A program made the translations under genes and the position numbers. This document shows, piece by piece, positions 7,701-21,750 of a stretch of DNA of 64,000 bases. The stretch is from Trichosphaerium sp. ATCC 40318 (taxonomy: Eukaryota > Protista > Tubulinea): positions 1-64,000 of the forward strand of contig JALMLS010000641.1 of assembly GCA_038496445.1 (NCBI GenBank), in the 5' to 3' direction. Numbering within the stretch: the stretch's first letter is position 1; each line of letters begins with the position of its first letter. The notes under the pieces were generated by a model. The model was not told the origin of the DNA. It searched no databases and saw nothing but the letters and a program-made list of their open reading frames with translations.

Positions 7701-10700
7701 TTTTGATTTTCTTTTTGAATGGTGATTAACCTCCCATGTAGGCATCTTTTTTGGCTGAGCTACGACATGTGAGTGTCATTTTTGTAAATCTAGAATTGAC
7801 ATACAGTAAACCTTTGTTGGCCAAGCTACAGGTGCGTGGGTTGTGTTTTTTTATTTGCTTTGACACTTTTTGTAGGAAGCTGTGTGTGAAATGCAAAAAG
7901 CAGTGTACCTCTATGAAGGTGTTGTTCGTCAATTTATTGTAGATGATAAAGGTACTACTATTTCCTTATTATTTCAACTTATTAACATCTTTTCAGGGAG
8001 TGTTCTAATTGCTGCGTTTGGACTACCTCCAAAGACGCATGAAGATGATCCTTCACGTGCTGTAAAAGCTGCAATAAAGCTCCGAGAATGCCTTACAAGG
8101 CTAAACATTCAAAGTAGTATTGGTGTAACTACAGGATCGGCGTTTTGTGGTGCTGTTGGAAGTAATCTACGGCGTGAATACGCTCTTGTTGGAGATATAG
8201 TGGTATGGTTTTCAACTAGCTTTTTATTATTATTTTGTAAGCCTTACGTATTATCTATAGAATCTCTCTGCACGTCTCATGGTTGCTGCTGGTACAAACC
8301 AAATATTTGTAGATAAGAAAACGTACCTAGCGGCTAAGTGTGTTGACTATCAAGCTCTTGCTCCTATCAAAGTTAAGGTATGTAATTTATCTTCGTTTAA
8401 GTCAAATACACGCTGAACGAACTTGTTAGGGTAAAGAAAGACCTGTAGAAGTTTTTGCACCTATCCAACATCAGATATCGAAGCGTACACTCAGTATAAG
8501 TAGTTTTAGACCTCAAATGCTTCAGACTATGCGTCAGTCTGGTGCACAAAGTGTATTTGTTGGAAGGTATTGTACTCTCTTCGAAATGGTTGATATTAAT
8601 TTGATGATTTGTCATTAGATCCGGTATTCTAACAAAAGTTTTTGAAGCAGTTGGCTCTGCTGTTGCAAAAGAGGGTAAAAACGCAAGGGTATTTGTAGTA
8701 GAAGGTAGCCCTGGTATAGGAAAGACAGCATTGTTAAAAATGATGAACTCCAGATGCGGAAAATTAGGTGCCAAAGTGAGTATTACAATTTTTTTTTCCT
8801 CTTTTGTACTTAATGGTTTTTTCTTCGTATAGACGTCTATTGGTGTTTGTGATGCCATTGAGAAGAATGCACCTTACTTTCCTTGGCGTAATATTGTCCA
8901 TGCTATGCTACAGGATATATCCAATAAATCAGACAAGGGGACTAGTCAAACTACTATGAGTCTTTTGACAGTACTTGTCAAAACATATGCACCTGACTTG
9001 ATTGGTTCAGTGTCTGTTCTCGCAAGTAGCTTGGGTGCGTCTTGTGATCATTGGATGTTTTTATAGTACTTAATGTATTTTTGTTGTAGGTACTAGAACG
9101 AGCGGTCAGCATAGAGATATGGAAGCTCATTTGCGATCAGATAAGATGCTTAAACTTATAATGAAGCTACTTGAATCAACTGGCCAGCATTTGATTATAT
9201 TCGATAATGTTCAGTGGTACGCACTTTCTCTTTGTATAAACCTTTTGCTATGAGCTCTGTAGTACTACGTACAAATACTGGATCAGTCCTACTCCGTCAG
9301 AGATGGGTTCATGCGCTTTTTTTTTTGCTTTTTTTTAACTATTTTTGGTTTGCTCAGTTGTTGCATTAGGATGGATTCAAAGTCTGCTGAGCTTATACAA
9401 GCAGCAATAGAAAACCTTAAAGATGTTGTTATAGTACTCGCTCTACGCCCATCAGATCCACCAATTCAGTATATTGCTAAGATTGCCTCTGCTGATAGCA
9501 CAAAGCAAATTTCTCTGAAGGGATTAACTAAAGCAGAGGTAATTGTTTTGCTGTTTAATACATCCTGGTTGTTTCTTACGGCGATTTTTAGGTTGCCAAG
9601 TTAATCAACAAGCATTTAGAAGTGCGTATGGTTCCAAAGACATTCCCAGGAATGATTGAAGTGGCGTCTGATGGAAATCCTATGCTTGTAAAAGAAATGC
9701 TAGATCACCTTCTTACAACCAATCAACTAACAGTTCGCGGTGGAGAATTAACGTTGTCCAAAGGCAGTACGTATATCTATATTGTTTTGAATTACTCTAA
9801 TGTATGTTCTCCTATCTTTAGTGTCTATATCAGGTCAAGCAGCTATGCCTACAACGCTTACAAGTGTTATAACAGCCAAGATTGATTTTCTTACAAAAAA
9901 GTTACAAATTGTTTTAAAGGTCGCTTCTGTTATTGGAAGGTGCTTCTCTCTTGATATCCTTAAAGCACTACTTGATGTATATCAAGAAGGAGAAACCTCA
10001 AAGGTTTCATTAAGAGAGAGTCTCGATGAATTATCTCTTAGTGGCTTGGTTGCAATCGAAAAATACGATAGCGAAGGAGATGCTAGTGTTTATCGTTTCG
10101 AACAGATAGTTACACTAGATGTAGTATATAATACTATGCTTTATGCCCAAAGAAGAGAACTACATAGTCGTATTGCAAAGGTAAGATAGAACAACCTTAT
10201 GGTCTCGACCTATAGCAATTACGAAACAACTTTTAGAAAAACAAGTTTTTTTTTCTACTGCTGGATTTTTTTTTGACTCTAAAGTTTGTTTGTATTTATA
10301 TCGTTTTATTTTTAGGTTCATGAAGAAAGAGTAAGTAAGGATGGTGATCATGTTGATTACTCTATTCTTGGACATCATCACAACTGTGCTGGTAACCAAG
10401 CTAAAGCTATACATTACTTTTTACTTTCTGGTAAACAAGCGATGAATGAGTGTGCGAACAGGGAAGCTATAAAGTTTTTTAAGCAGTGCTTGGCTATAAA
10501 TGATGATGGAGATAAGTCTTTTAAATCAAATAGGCTTAAATTCGTTAGTATACATAGACAACTTGGACAAGCTTACTGTGGTAAGGCTCGCTTTTCTTTG
10601 ATTTTATTTTTTCGGTTGTACTTTGTAACATTGTTTGACGTTTTTGTACTAGCCTTGGGTCTGTTAAAACCCGCTGAAGATTCTCTAATGGAAGCACTAA

Positions 10701-13341: not shown

Positions 13342-13895
13342 ATGGAAAAGAAAGAAAAAAAGACAACTACCAAAAAATGTTATCTATTGCACCTGCCAGT
13401 GGAGCTACATGCATGTATTATTGATTTAGACCATGATGTATACAAAAAATGGCCTATTTTAAATAAATATGCAGCAATGACTTCAAGGTTTGACTAGATT
13501 TGAAGAAACATGGTAAGTGGTCAAGAAAAAAAAGACACTTTTTGGATTGGGGTTTGTGGGATAATTTGAGGACAGAGTGTTGGTTTTTACATGACAAACT
13601 TGATGGTGAGTGCAAACTTTGGAAAAACGGTGTTTTGATTTACACGCGTCAGTACATCAATGGCAGATTACATGGTGATTACAAGTCTTGGTGCTGTTTT
13701 GGACAATTGCTTAAGCATTTTCAGTACGTCAACGATCTATTAGAAGGAGAATACAAGGAGTGGTATTATACAGGTCAACTATCGATTCAGTGTTATTATG
13801 TTGCTGGTGTTATTCACGGAGAGTACAAGAAATGGCGTATAGACGGTACATTAGTGGAACAATGTAAATATGTGTACGGCGAAAAAGAGAAATAA
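13342..13895 (+). pseudogene. F-box-like + MORN-variant repeat protein, frameshifted (1 nt missing) at about 13495
   Basis: ATG13342 gives MEKKEKKTTTKKCYLLHLPVELHACIIDLD...WPILNKYAAMTSRFD* and then (D)LKKHGKW...MORN repeats in the -1 frame; the intact paralog at 17384-18011 reads TRFDEELNKHGKW. Confidence 0.75.
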
Positions 13896-14593: not shown

Positions 14594-17101
14594 ATGCCTC
14601 AAAAAGGGAAAAAAAAGGGTGGATCTAAGAAGCCATGCGAAGGTACATAATTTTTGATGGTTGTTTGGTACAATCTGTATTTAAATTGTTTTTTTTTTTT
14701 TACACAGGTTTTGTATTCTGCCTCAGCGGTGTTCTATCTGAAACAAAAGCGCTACTGACGAACAAAATCACTCGTAACGGTGGTAAGTAGGAAAAACCTT
14801 TCAAAATACTATCATCAACTCTACAATGTATTCTCTGTTATCCAGTGAGTTCTAACGTCTGGTTTTTTTTTTTTGAAACAGGCGTAGTAAAAAAACACCT
14901 ATCAAGTGCAGTAAATATACTCATATCAACAGAAGACGAGGTTAGTCTACAAAGTAACAAAGTAGAAAAGGCAAAGCTGCTCTCTGTACCAATTGTTCAC
15001 GAAGACTATCTTTTCGAGCTACTCGCTAGAGAAAAGCCTTACCTTGAGGATTTTTTACTTTACGACGAGGAATATGAAGAATATGAAGAATATGAGGAAT
15101 ATAAGCAGCGAGAGCACGTGCCAAAACCGAAAAAAAAAGTTACAACGAAGAAACCCACCAAAAATTACGCAAGTACACGGAGGGGAGTTAAAAGAAAATT
15201 AGATGATAGTCGTACGTGCGAAGCCATTCTAGACGAGATTTATCAAGAGCGCAAGGTGATTTAACTTTTTTTTTTTTCGATTTTTTGCTTTCAACGGCTA
15301 AAACCTTTTTCTTTGTACTGACTCTACAAAAAAAAGGGTAAAAACCGTAAAACTATTTTAACGAGGTTATCTGGAGAGTTTTATACAGCTATTCCTCTTA
15401 AACTTGGTCGAAGTAAGGCATTGTCTAGCGCTTCTGTAAAATCAACAAGGAAAGGGAAGAGTGAATTGGTTCAGCTTGTTAATGATGTCGTTAACGTATG
15501 TTTTTCGGTTTTGGGTTTTATTTTTTTTTTGGCTACTTGCCGGCCATTCTACAACGTTTTACAAAAAGTCAGGTAAACTCCTGTGAAAGAGGAGATGCAC
15601 CATATGCGGAAGAATTAGATGCTAAATACAAGGCTCTTGGTGATGAAATCAAACACGTAATATTTTTTTCCGCCTTGGCGTTACGTGACGTTTTGTACTG
15701 ATTTTTTTTCCCTTTCAATAGCTTAAGCGTAACAGCGCTGAATGGAAAAAAGTTATGACCCAGTTGGTATTGATGCAAGACCAAGACAAAAAAAATACAA
15801 TATCTAGGCCCTCTATGGTATCAATAACTGTACGACAGGATATTTAAGAAGTAATCAAGATCTAAAAGCGAGATAGTGTCCTGGATTGGGTAAGAAGGCT
15901 CATTTGTGTGTAGAAGCGGAGAGATGCTTAAGATGCGGTATTGAGCTCCATAAGGATCCAGGATTTGCAGAAAAGAGTTGGTACGTTTACTCTTATGGAA
16001 AAAGCCCAGGTGGACTCACATTAACGAATTCGTTAGGCTACGCATTGTTTACGAGGCTGTAAAGTGTCTTCATAATGAGCGGCAACCCCACTCCAAGTTC
16101 TTCCATTACAAGCGAGATATATGTAGTTATATAGATAAACACTGGAGTGCTCTGTGTCCACAAAAGAAACGTACGTGCACTGTTTAAACTAACACGTAGT
16201 AAAATTTGGCTACGTAGTTGAGCAAAACGCGCTTTATTGTGATTCTTACTGTATTTAGGGACGTCCACTTGGAATAATACGGTGTCTGCTGTTATTACAA
16301 CTCATAGAGGCATATTTCAGTCAAATCAGAAACAATCAGGATTTTGGACGCTAAGGCCAACTTCTGAGGATGATCTTTATGACACAGTTGGTTCAGAGTC
16401 CCCGAATAATCACGAAGTTCATTCGCTTGCTTCACCACAAAAACTGCACTCACCAAAGAGAAAATCGCAGGGTACGCGTTTTTTCATGTCTCACTTGAGG
16501 AAAAGACCGGTTCACAACAGTTTGTCCTGAACCTTTCTGAAAAAAAGCTTGTTACTGACTTATTCTGACTTTTTTTCTTTTTCAAAAAGATATGTACTAC
16601 GATGAGTTTTGTGAAGAAGATTTGGTTGTATCACCTCCTCAACCTTTACGTAAGAGAAGAAGGTATAAAGAAACACCAGATATATGGTTACGATCAACAC
16701 CACAAAAGAGAAAATCAAAAAACCCGAAAACAATTGAGATAGTCGTACCTGAATACTTGTATGAGAAGGCAATGAAAGATATGGAAAATATACGTACAAT
16801 ACCTGATGATATATTGGTACCAACTTGGAGACCAGTCAAATGCTACAGGAGCGAGTGCTCAAAACTTTTAAAAAAAAAAGAATTCATGAAAAAACAAAAA
16901 ATGGATATTGATCGCTTTGATCCTCTTGAAGACTTCTATAGCTTTTGTCCACAAGAAGAAAATATGTATGATAGTGATGGTAATATAGTACAAGAGAAGA
17001 GAGAACGTTTTGAAGATGAGTTTTATCATAAATTGCATTCTCCTTATGAACAATGGGAAAGAAGGAACCTAAGGCCCAAAAGAGAGGAGATACGGTTTTA
17101 G
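14594..17101 (+). CDS. Chimeric nuclear protein: BRCT + PARP regulatory-like helical domain + ASH2-like winged helix + PEHE-like motif (multi-exon)
   Basis: GFVFCLSG...ITRNGG...KVEKAKLLSVPIVHEDYL (BRCT); LTRLSGEFYTAIP...LDAKYKAL (PARP_reg); SWLRIVYEA...FFHYKRDICSYIDKHW...TWNNTVS (ASH2 WH); ILVPTWR...EDEFYHKLHSPYEQWERR (PEHE). Confidence 0.65.
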
Positions 17102-17383: not shown

Positions 17384-18011
17384 TTACAAGCAAATACATG
17401 ACATTGAGCATTGTTCATAGTGGTCACTCGCTGGTTCTTCTTCTTTCTCATAGATGTAAAAACCTTGTGCTTTAAATTGACCATCAATACCCCACTGTTG
17501 AAACACACCATCCATAACGTCATTGGTGTAATTACCTTTCTTTGCAATTTGACCATTCGGGAAAAACTGCCTAAACTCACCCTCTAGTTTGCCTCTCTTA
17601 TAGTTCTTAGATAAAACTAAACGGCCTTCATCATACGCCTTGTACTCTCCATCTAGATTACCATCGACATAATTCAAAGTAAAAGATAGGATATTATTTA
17701 CGTATATCCTTTTTTCTCCATGAAGTTGGCCATGCTTCCAGCTCTCTTCATATCGCCAATTTCTTTTCCATTTGTTTATCCGCTTGCGTATCCACTTGCC
17801 ATGTTTGTTTAACTCTTCATCAAACCTCGTTGTTATTGCTGTATGTTTTGATAACAAAGGCCACTTTACTTGTACTTCAAAGTCAATGTCTATCATATCG
17901 AGATGAAGTTCCACAGGAAGACGAAGAAGTTGACAATCTGATTTTGGTTGTGGCTATTTTATATGAAACGAAGCTAATTGGCTTATTATGTACCTCATTT
18001 ATTAGTTCCAT
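17384..18011 (-). CDS. F-box-like + MORN-variant repeat protein (intact; one short 5' intron)
   Basis: MELINE|PQPKSDCQLLRLPVELHLDMIDID...WPLLSKH...HGKW followed by G..HGE..Y..NG type MORN repeats. Confidence 0.8.
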
Positions 18012-19661: not shown

Positions 19662-21750
19662 CTATAGGGACTCATCTTCATCTACATCTCCTGGTTTTGT
19701 GTTATGTACAAGACTTGCAAGTTGTTGTGCTTTTACTGCAGCTGCCGCTTTTTTCTTTTTTTTCATTTCCTTCTTGTTCTTTCTTGCTTTTTTCTTTGAT
19801 GTTACAGTATCTGTGGTACCTATTGCGCTTGGTGGTCTAATACAAGGCCCAGATGCATGTGATTCTACAAGGGAAGACTCTTCAGTTTCTTGTGAGTCTT
19901 CATCTTCCTCTTCTGACATTTCTAGAATGAAAGAATTGTGGTCTTTTACCGCTGTTTTTATGATATCGTCATTAGCCAAAACCTCAGTAGAGCTACCTCC
20001 CGTTGTCACAACGCGGTTTGTGCTGCTAGCTCTAAAAAACGTAGTCAGGTATTTGCTACTCTCACTTTTTTCTTACTTTTTTGCTTGTCCTTCCAAAGTC
20101 CAGAAAAGGCGAAGTACTGGCCACGCAAGGTATATAAGCACGACACATGCTGTGAATTCTAAAACAAGGCCTGTAAAAGCGAGAATAAAAGCGAATGTGT
20201 TGTATATTAGCTGAGCTTTAATCAACGCTTCATGTCTTTCACTAAATAACGTCATCAATGCAACGAACAGAAGTGACAATTTTCGTACAATAAAAGCTCT
20301 AGAAGAGGATCCTTTGCGCTTAGAACTTGAGTCATATTTCCAAACCAATGTACAGCATTGACAGTCAAAGAATTATTTATACCAATACTCTTTGCGGACT
20401 AAGACAGTTAGCCAAAAGTATTTGGCAAAAAAAATAAAAATCCTTGCATCAAGTGCAATTTGTCTCCACTCATCAGTCTTATTCAAGGCAATAACAACAT
20501 CAGGCTTTGCCTGAATGCAAATAGAAGGGTTAGATAATGTATTTGAGAGACTAGGTGTTTAATCGTACGAGTAATTCTTTGCTAAACTGACGTTCGTCTT
20601 CTTTAAGCAAAATATCCATTTCGTGTCGATGTTCTTCTTTCAAAACAAGAACCCTCAATAGATTATTATATTCCTCCCTATCTCGGAAATAACCTAATGC
20701 GACTATGAGAACACAAGATCACAACGTTCAAAAAAAACAACGTACCTTGCTGAAATACCAAACTGAGAGCACCACGTTCGTACGCTGTGTATTCATTCAA
20801 CTGAAACAAAAAAATCAAAACAACTCATGTGACATTATTGTATTTTTCAAGCTGCGGTAGGTTGTTTTGATGTTAAAAGAGCGAACGTACTAAGTTGAAG
20901 CGAACAATAGCCAATAATTGACGACTGGATTGCTCAATGTCCGTGAAGCTCTCACGGAGACCAAAATCAAACAGCTGTCTGTTTAAATCCGTGTAGTAAG
21001 CAAGCGAATTAGTACCCGATACTTCCAGATCAGAGATCTATGCAGTAGGTAAGATTTTGAAAGGCATCTGTGCGTGTGTGTACGCAAAATCCGCAATGAA
21101 TCCATACCTTTATTCTATACGCATTGAGCGTTTCTAGGGACTCTAATGCTTTATCCAAGATAGCATACTTGATAGGGACGCTATCACGGTCTTTTCGGAG
21201 TCTGTACACTTGATCGTCCACCGTTCTCCTTGCAGTAACTAAAACAGGGTATTAGTTAAAAAAGAAGAGTTGTAGACTTGAGTACTCAATTCGGATTTTG
21301 ATACGGTGCCATTACTCGCAATGAATAAGGAGCTAAGACCTCTTTCTACCCCGATAGCAGCAGTGACATCGACTGTATCGCTTATGAGTTTCTCCCTGCT
21401 TCGATAAACGCTCACGTTGTAGATATCCGCCGTGATTGTCAAAAAAAAGTAAAAGAAGATAACTGCGCTTGCAATACCTAAAACAGACCAAAATTAGTTA
21501 GAAAGAATAACAACACCATATAGCTTTGCAATTAAATAGGTTAAAGCGTTATAGCTTTCCATTCTATAAAAACAAAATCTAGGCGCGGAAAAACAAATAG
21601 ACCGTACCTACAAGCGCCCGAAATATTCCTGAGCGTAGACGTGTCCTTACAGCGCGTTGACTCTTATTCCTTGCTGGTATACATCCACATAATAGGTTGC
21701 ATTGATAGAGTACCATTATTACTTACTCTGATTGTTAAAACGACTATCTG
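19662..21750 (-). CDS. Two-TM membrane protein with an extracellular NIT (nitrate/nitrite-sensing)-like domain and a short low-complexity tail; 5' end uncertain
   Basis: TM GIFRALV|GIASAVIFFYFFLTI; AIGVERGLSSLFIASNG...TARRTVD...LETLNAYRIK...AYYTDLNRQL...YERGALSLVFQQGYF; second TM AFILAFTGLVLEFTACVVLIYL. Confidence 0.6.

Follow-up and report, generated by a model that had tools for sequence, protein, structure and literature searches.

Enzymes of the PARP1/PARP2 type that carry a BRCT domain also contain a WGR domain, a helical (regulatory) domain and an ADP-ribosyltransferase fold. In ASH2L, a subunit of COMPASS/MLL, a PHD-like finger stands ahead of a winged helix, while MSL1 and KANSL1 use their PEHE region to hold the MOF acetyltransferase. 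Genes can also be built from parts of other genes, and jingwei in Drosophila is an example of a chimeric gene that arose by partial duplication or exon shuffling. The gene considered here has features of each of these systems. It lies at positions 14594-17101 on the forward strand of a 64,000-nucleotide stretch of DNA (the window) from Trichosphaerium sp. ATCC 40318, and joins PARP-derived exons to the exons of a small protein with an ASH2L-type winged helix and a PEHE-like tail. The locus is a chimeric gene that is specific to its lineage and arose by partial duplication, and we put the probability that one fused protein of 603 amino acids is made from it at roughly 0.55.

The window is contig C202 of an assembly of 70.3 Mb in 642 contigs. 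Around the gene the DNA is eukaryotic, with about 36% G+C and short GT..AG introns. The initial annotation had placed a single spliced frame here, and the assembly bears this out: an open frame of ten exons (Table 1) runs on the forward strand from the ATG at 14594 to a TAG at 17099-17101 and amounts to 1812 nt, or 603 codons and the stop. No exon is interrupted in its own frame. The five split codons encode G, G, W, R and D, and the last three are confirmed by P0001, a transcript open reading frame (ORF) that is described below. The exons were searched one by one, and the continuity of the frame was established by arithmetic and from P0001. All of the strings on which the earlier domain proposals were based were recovered: LTRLSGEFYTAIP in exon 4, LDAKYKALGDEIKH/LKRNSAEW across exons 5 and 6 (the slash marks the exon boundary), CPGLGKKAHLC..CLRC in exon 7, the winged helix in exons 8-9, and both ILVPTWR and EDEFYHKLHSPYEQWERR in exon 10.

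Where do the first six exons come from? Exons 2-6 are collinear with a gene on contig C38 (compared over a 10-kb stretch, L021), with 51-70% amino-acid identity and with intron positions and phases kept. Exon 4 matches C38:168856-169023 at 74% identity (E 2e-15) and is 70-74% identical to that exon of the paralogue. The C38 gene (~167170-170120) is a complete BRCT-WGR-PARP_reg-PARP gene, with BRCT at 21.3 bits, a weak WGR match, PARP_reg at 34.2 bits and the catalytic domain at 26.8 bits, the last from a single exon that contains LYHGS. In the window copy, exon 3 matches Pfam BRCT (PF00533) over profile positions 38-78 of 78 with E 0.0039 and 17.8 bits against a cut-off of 21.3 bits, the exon being scored alone because the first half of the domain sits in exon 2; the paralogue's equivalent of exon 3 reaches 21.3 bits. 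Exon 4 matches Pfam PARP_reg (PF02877) over positions 67-111 of 135 with E 0.0083 and 16.6 bits, below the cut-off of 26.8, and this too is a score for exons taken apart rather than joined. Since exon 4 is 70-74% identical to a C38 exon that scores 34.2 bits, it descends from a true PARP_reg exon. Similarity to the paralogue stops at residue 22 of exon 6. Alignment with the C38 gene shows the front half to be an old, diverged partial duplicate of it.

The copy has the same start as the C38 gene, which is its nearest PARP1/PARP2-type relative with a BRCT domain, and shares with it the BRCT region, the second half of the helical domain and the intron positions of exons 1-6. Unlike such enzymes, it lacks the WGR domain, the first half of the helical domain and the ADP-ribosyltransferase fold. 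The two ends of exon 3 match stretches of the paralogue that lie ~1.1 kb apart (L021 3430-3606 and 4747-4803), and an in-frame deletion inside this exon accounts for the loss of WGR and of the helical domain's first half. WGR (PF05406) has no match on C202, and a weak match at C38:167973-168041 in the paralogue alone; a full PARP helical domain was not found in the gene either, where only positions 67-111 of the profile are matched. None of the genome's 90 matches to the PARP catalytic family PF00644 lies on C202, and similarity to the paralogue ends at about 15790, ahead of the paralogue's LYHGS exon. The proposal of a PARP front end without a catalytic domain is thus upheld by the C38 paralogy and by the absence of PF00644, but it understated the loss, which extends to WGR and half of the helical domain. 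As the window copy has no ADP-ribosyltransferase fold, it cannot be an enzyme.

How old is the copy, and has it remained a coding sequence? Similarity between the two copies at the DNA level is confined to exons (67-74%). Over 204 aligned codons, nucleotide identity is 64%, or 69, 81 and 41% by codon position; dN is 0.29-0.30, and dS is ~1.8 by the LWL85 method or not computable. By this measure the front copy is old, its dS being saturated. The initial annotation had offered a recent gene fusion as one explanation, and the kind of event holds (part of the C38 PARP gene was duplicated and sits on what other organisms have as a separate gene), but the event is not recent. With other PARPs of the genome as outgroup, 14 sites changed in the lineage of the window copy and four in that of the paralogue, counts that are not independent, several outgroups having been pooled; the loss of the His of FYTxIPH is among these changes. 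On these estimates the window copy evolves faster than its parent, yet far below the neutral rate.

A front half of this kind might be the dead remains of a PARP gene, with its exons reduced to the 5' untranslated region of the winged-helix gene. Every catalytic part is absent, the scores fall under the Pfam cut-offs, the copy changes ~3.5 times faster than its parent, and the caller of the transcript ORF did not join front to back half. However, a dN of 0.30 stands against a saturated dS, some 283 codons are free of stops and frameshifts in DNA of 36% G+C, and the internal deletion is clean and in frame. Neutral decay over such divergence would have broken the frame many times. Because dN is far under dS and because the start codon, five GT..AG splice-site pairs and the ~283 open codons have all been kept, the front half is not a decaying pseudogene, and its reduction to untranslated exons is quite improbable. 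Within exon 3, a perfect GAA-TAT-based repeat at 15065-15097 encodes EEYEEYEEYEEY; in this place the paralogue has a plain acidic run, DDMDVGDDDEDESEEE.

The 90 catalytic matches in the genome were counted by exon and are spread over dozens of contigs, and PARP_reg gives 16 matches. The genome appears to hold a large and diverse PARP family, which would be raw material for shuffling events like the one at the C202 locus. Some PARP-family matches on different contigs have equal scores (C28:248759-249091 and C340:4808-5140; C15:264661-264825 and C311:2247-2411 and 20464-20628), which points to very recent duplication or to copies that the assembly left uncollapsed.

What is the back half when it is found elsewhere? 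Exon 10 found one protein, P0001 (369 aa), in a library of 1.84 billion proteins. Searches with P0001 and a family alignment added nine further clusters (P0002-P0010) among 5.8 billion, bringing the family to ten clusters. A second copy of exon 10 in the genome was not found. Complete relatives are 349-351 aa long and start at a Met of their own, ~25-28 residues ahead of a conserved CxxC, and no BRCT or PARP exons lie upstream of them in the contigs of four relatives. Judged from these relatives, other organisms have the back half as a gene by itself, and the small winged-helix/PEHE-like family to which it belongs appears to be undescribed.

One of the relatives, L031, shows what exon 7 corresponds to. 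Its first coding exon reads MSRPESRASQAPPAGARPGPGLGHRQ...FAASSW, and the intron that follows is in the same phase as intron 7 of the window gene. Exon 7 matches PGLGHRQVKGQSLTVNRCEQCGVEFFVHPPFAASS of L031, where the ATG sits 19 codons upstream. Because the sequences match and the intron phase is the same, exon 7 of the window (CPGLGKK...) is that L031 exon minus its first ~19 codons. The tail of exon 6 at 15803-15817 reads I-SRPSM (ATA TCT AGG CCC TCT ATG), and the N-terminus of L031 at 9631-9648 reads M-SRPES. If the two were homologous, the old ATG of the adaptor would now be ATA and the join would lie inside exon 6; the match is too short for significance.

The winged helix itself had been proposed to be of the ASH2L type, and this was confirmed: P0001 matches Pfam ASH2L-like_WH (PF21198) with 31.8 bits and E 1.9e-7, above the cut-off of 25. 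An AF2 model built from a seven-sequence alignment is confident only at residues 63-160 (block-mean pLDDT ~59-91), the rest of P0001 being disordered. Foldseek searches with this model returned forkhead, Polycomblike and linker-histone winged helices with weak E-values. In VIA-align comparisons, MTF2 gave Z 8.3 (rmsd 2.0, 78 residues aligned), PHF1 Z 8.1 and Polycomblike Z 7.5, although a Z near 8 alone is no proof of kinship. As modelled, the fold is a forkhead-type, ASH2L-like winged helix.

Is P0001 then an ASH2 protein? It resembles ASH2L in its winged helix and in having a CxxC segment ahead of it, in the place where ASH2L has its PHD-like finger. The initial annotation had described this stretch as a Cys/His segment (CPGLGKKAHLC..CLRC); the string is present, but among relatives the CxxC is its sole conserved element. 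Unlike ASH2L, P0001 is without SPRY, and among solved winged helices it is MTF2, PHF1 and Polycomblike, not ASH2L, whose structures come closest to its own. Pfam found neither SPRY nor any family besides the winged helix on P0001, and a better match to ASH2L-like_WH exists in the genome at C13:476247-476384. P0001 is not the ASH2 orthologue, as it has no SPRY and the better match is on C13.

The C-terminal part of the protein carries motifs that occur throughout the family: (I/V)PxW(R/K), an acidic stretch, and a helix (S/E)Dxx(F/Y)xxxHxxxExxE(K/R). PEHE is the best Pfam family in seven of eight C-terminal pieces from the family (best E 1.4e-4), with matches that span only profile positions ~22-46 of 127. 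Both signature motifs of MSL1 and KANSL1 are present in the same order, and the C-terminal family profile meets MSL1 in the MSL1-MOF entries 4dnc and 2y0m. By contrast with MSL1 and KANSL1, the family proteins are much smaller, lack their other regions and carry a winged helix that MSL1 and KANSL1 do not have. Searches of PDB sequences with exon 10 alone and with the whole-family profile gave nothing relevant, and the ESM Atlas returned for the C-terminal part only meaningless structural neighbours of a disordered model. A PEHE scan of the genome gave no match and is uninformative, the control genomes being silent too. The genome has three MYST genes, each split by introns, at C5:~53.7-54.5 kb, C2:~12.3-13.0 kb and C44:~198.6-199.0 kb. 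By analogy with MSL1 and KANSL1, the tail is predicted to bind a MYST acetyltransferase.

Are the two halves transcribed together? P0001 is the TransDecoder ORF of the MMETSP transcript Transcript_3671/g.4070. Every piece of it matches the window, with exons 5-10 at 100% and introns 5-9 removed. It begins at the ATG at 15619 in exon 5, in a shifted frame (residues 1-12 match 15619-15654), crosses from exon 5 to exon 6 at the PARP splice sites, and continues through exons 6-10; exon 10 is identical to its residues 201-369 (100%). A single spliced RNA links the PARP-derived exons 5-6 to the winged-helix exons 7-10. The initial annotation had considered that transcripts might stop at the TAA near 15846, with a separate gene downstream. 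This TAA (15845-47) would end the protein if intron 6 were retained, but P0001 splices it out (intron 15830-15876) and runs from exon 5 to exon 10. The claim that there is no intergenic gap also holds. The frame of exon 7 is closed by a TAG at 15874-76 that overlaps the acceptor, and exons 7-9 are without an ATG; therefore, an upstream coding exon is needed. The in-frame ATGs found upstream of exon 7 are all in exon 6.

Several observations weigh against a fused protein, or against the role suggested by its parts. The RNA on record covers exons 5-10 and not exons 1-4. This sole transcript has one base more than the assembly at GG-AAAAAA-GTT (15746-15752), where P0001 reads ..NGKK/VMTQ so that base 15752 is used twice; the extra base is A or G (seven A, or AAAAAAGG). 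The expected single transcript across 15720-15980 is present in P0001, which spans this interval, but the extra base breaks the fused frame in RNA. With it, the reading frame of the BRCT/helical part is 275 codons long, ends near 15805-07 and is distinct from that of the winged helix, and if the RNA is right and the assembly wrong there is no fused protein. A product of exons 1-4 was not found in a search that covered proteins of 86-274 aa, a blank that is uninformative, since the split ORF would be 275 aa, and the protein collection yielded no fused product of 203-646 aa. Unlike PARP1/PARP2-type enzymes, the window copy has lost the conserved His of FYTxIPH (IPH to IPL), and the helical remnant, at 16.6 bits and without this His, may no longer fold like the original. 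As for the PEHE motif claimed by the initial annotation, the motif pair is found family-wide and PEHE leads among Pfam families, but the PEHE (PF15275) cut-off of 34 bits was reached in none of the eight pieces, with the window protein at 12.6-15.8 bits, and the meeting with the MSL1 chains of 4dnc and 2y0m has a weak E of 0.47.

One way to read the extra base is that the locus contains two overlapping frames and no fusion. A 275-codon protein of BRCT and helical remnant would be made, together with a separate winged-helix/PEHE-like protein of ~345 aa that starts at an ATG in exon 6 (15755, 15773 or 15815), by an internal transcription start or by a second use of the same RNA. P0001, the sole RNA evidence, needs one base more than the assembly, and Illumina-based transcript assemblies seldom miscount runs of 6-7 bases. 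The relatives of the back half are standalone proteins of ~350 aa, and the ATG at 15815 lies within a few codons of their start (MSRPES.. in L031 and ISRPSM in the window, a resemblance too short to count). However, the paralogue reads EWKKVMSHL in the assembly's frame, and the in-frame state is therefore ancestral; two frames would need a derived frameshift and, in addition, a mistake in the assembly that happened to bring back precisely the ancestral frame, while at eight further runs of 6-10 A in the gene the assembly is consistent with the transcript or with the frame of the paralogue. The front ORF would end with four spliced introns still to follow and without a 3' end of its own, which is odd for a gene under purifying selection, and translation of the back ORF would have an ORF of 275 codons ahead of it on the same RNA. 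Two separate proteins are a possible but rather unlikely outcome.

The difference of one base could also be made in the RNA, by polymerase slippage or by editing that copies the neighbouring base, in which case both fused and split messages would come from one gene. The extra base does repeat a neighbouring letter within a run. However, nothing shows nuclear RNA editing in this organism, polymerase slippage is usually seen at runs longer than six, and eight other, longer runs in the same transcript are unchanged, so that an origin in the RNA is very improbable. The two halves are in one frame in the assembly and out of register by one base in the transcript ORF; a single polypeptide is only somewhat more likely than not.

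Table 1. Exons and junction features of the chimeric gene (positions in the window; a slash marks an exon boundary)
Feature	Position	Strand	Content
Exon 1	14594..14642	+	Start codon and basic N-terminus MPQKGKKKGGSKKPCE, phase 1 end; collinear with paralogue MPPKKKKKIVKNPCE/G, intron in the same place
Exon 2	14708..14782	+	First half of BRCT (FVFCLSGVLSETKALLTNKITRNG); 58% identical to paralogue exon, E 4e-7; splice sites inferred from GT..AG and the paralogue
Exon 3	14882..15255	+	Second half of BRCT, acidic EEY repeat, basic linker, then the in-frame deletion joint, ..KRKLDDSR joined to TCEAILDEIYQERK
Exon 4	15337..15495	+	Middle of PARP helical (regulatory) domain (LTRLSGEFYTAIPLKLGRSK...); includes LTRLSGEFYTAIP
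Exon 5	15573..15656	+	End of helical domain (..LDAKYKALGDEIKH); 68% identical to paralogue
Exon 6 (junction exon)	15722..15829	+	Last PARP-derived residues LKRNSAEWKKVMTQLVLMQDQD, then 14-residue tail KKNTISRPSMVSIT without PARP similarity; donor at 15830 taken from P0001 (..SMVSIT/CPGLG)
A6 run	15746..15751	+	Inside exon 6; transcript has one base more than assembly
Intron 6	15830..15876	+	47 nt, GTACGA..AG; absent from P0001; contains in-frame TAA
Exon 7	15877..15980	+	CPGLGKKAHLCVEAERCLRCGIELHKDPGFAEKS-W; first coding exon of standalone relatives minus first ~19 codons
Intron 7	15981-16036	+	From P0001
Exon 8	16037..16170	+	First half of ASH2L-like winged helix (LRIVYEAVKCLHNERQPHSKFFHYKRDICSYIDKHWSALCPQKK); P0001 match; 64-70% identical to relatives; Pfam ASH2L-like_WH
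Exon 9	16259..16471	+	Second half of winged helix (TSTWNNTVSAVITTHRGIFQS..GFWTLRP), a block invariant in all relatives, then disordered linker
Exon 10	16590..17101	+	Disordered basic region, IVVPEY.. and ILVPTWR motifs, acidic stretch, PEHE-like helix ERFEDEFYHKLHSPYEQWERR, stop TAG

A first splice model, with a donor at 15818 and a 29-nt intron at 15981-16009, was ruled out by P0001, which uses the donor at 15830 and removes 15981-16036. The GT at 15818 would make exon 6 the same length as its paralogous exon (32 codons, phase 0), and the transcript uses a GT 12 nt further downstream. As both donors are in frame, alternative donor use is possible. Reading 15845-16060 in the ciliate code (TAA and TAG as Gln) gave no recognisable protein, whereas the spliced frame yields the winged helix. 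Rfam gave no match in the window. ORFs with MORN repeats lie on both sides of the gene, at 13500-13895 on the forward and 17384-17914 on the reverse strand, in opposite orientation and converging on the locus. Their matches to Pfam MORN_2 (E 7e-4 and 1e-4) are both below the cut-off, and they may be paralogues that mark an inverted duplication.

How did the gene form? Duplication of the first six exons of the BRCT-WGR-PARP_reg-PARP gene, whose parent lineage survives on C38, took place at the DNA level and thereby preserved the introns. WGR and half of the helical domain went from the copy by the in-frame deletion, and everything from the catalytic domain onward is lost as well. The copy is now continuous, without a gap and in frame in the assembly, with a small chromatin-adaptor gene that elsewhere has ~350 aa and its own ATG; both halves have stayed coding, and one spliced RNA crosses the junction. 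As in jingwei and similar chimeric genes, a duplicated 5' part would equip a neighbouring gene with a promoter, a start codon and N-terminal domains, the junction exons being phase-compatible (0/0). Unlike in such genes, the event on C202 is old, with a saturated dS, and a single base puts in dispute whether the message is in frame. The kind of event is already known. The architecture is new to the protein collection and the literature searched; in a full-text search, no papers joined 'PEHE domain' with 'winged helix' or 'ASH2'.

What would a fused protein do? DNA binding would fall to the winged helix, while the PEHE-like tail would retain one of the three MYST acetyltransferases in the way that MOF is held by MSL1 and KANSL1. 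From the PARP pathway, the BRCT/helical remnant would contribute a module for protein-protein contacts, for example with the parental PARP or its BRCT partners, and would thereby link the adaptor to sites where the parental PARP acts. Both MYST binding and the recruitment of histone acetylation to DNA-damage or PAR sites, which the initial annotation raised as a possibility, are purely speculative. We propose only tentatively that a real 603-aa protein, a PARP module on an MSL1/KANSL1-like adaptor, brings MYST to DNA under the PARP pathway, and that the standalone proteins of ~350 aa are undescribed small MYST scaffolds in protists.

Should the extra base prove real, the locus would be an ordinary truncated paralogue that overlaps a neighbouring gene. 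If the fused protein is made, a catalytically dead PARP remnant has been retained over a long time to target a chromatin adaptor or to mediate its interactions, and the gene would be an experiment of nature on the role of a PARP's BRCT and helical parts in the absence of catalysis. The family of the back half, rare as it is (ten clusters among 5.8 billion), may reveal by what means MYST acetyltransferases are tethered in organisms that have no recognisable MSL1 or KANSL1.

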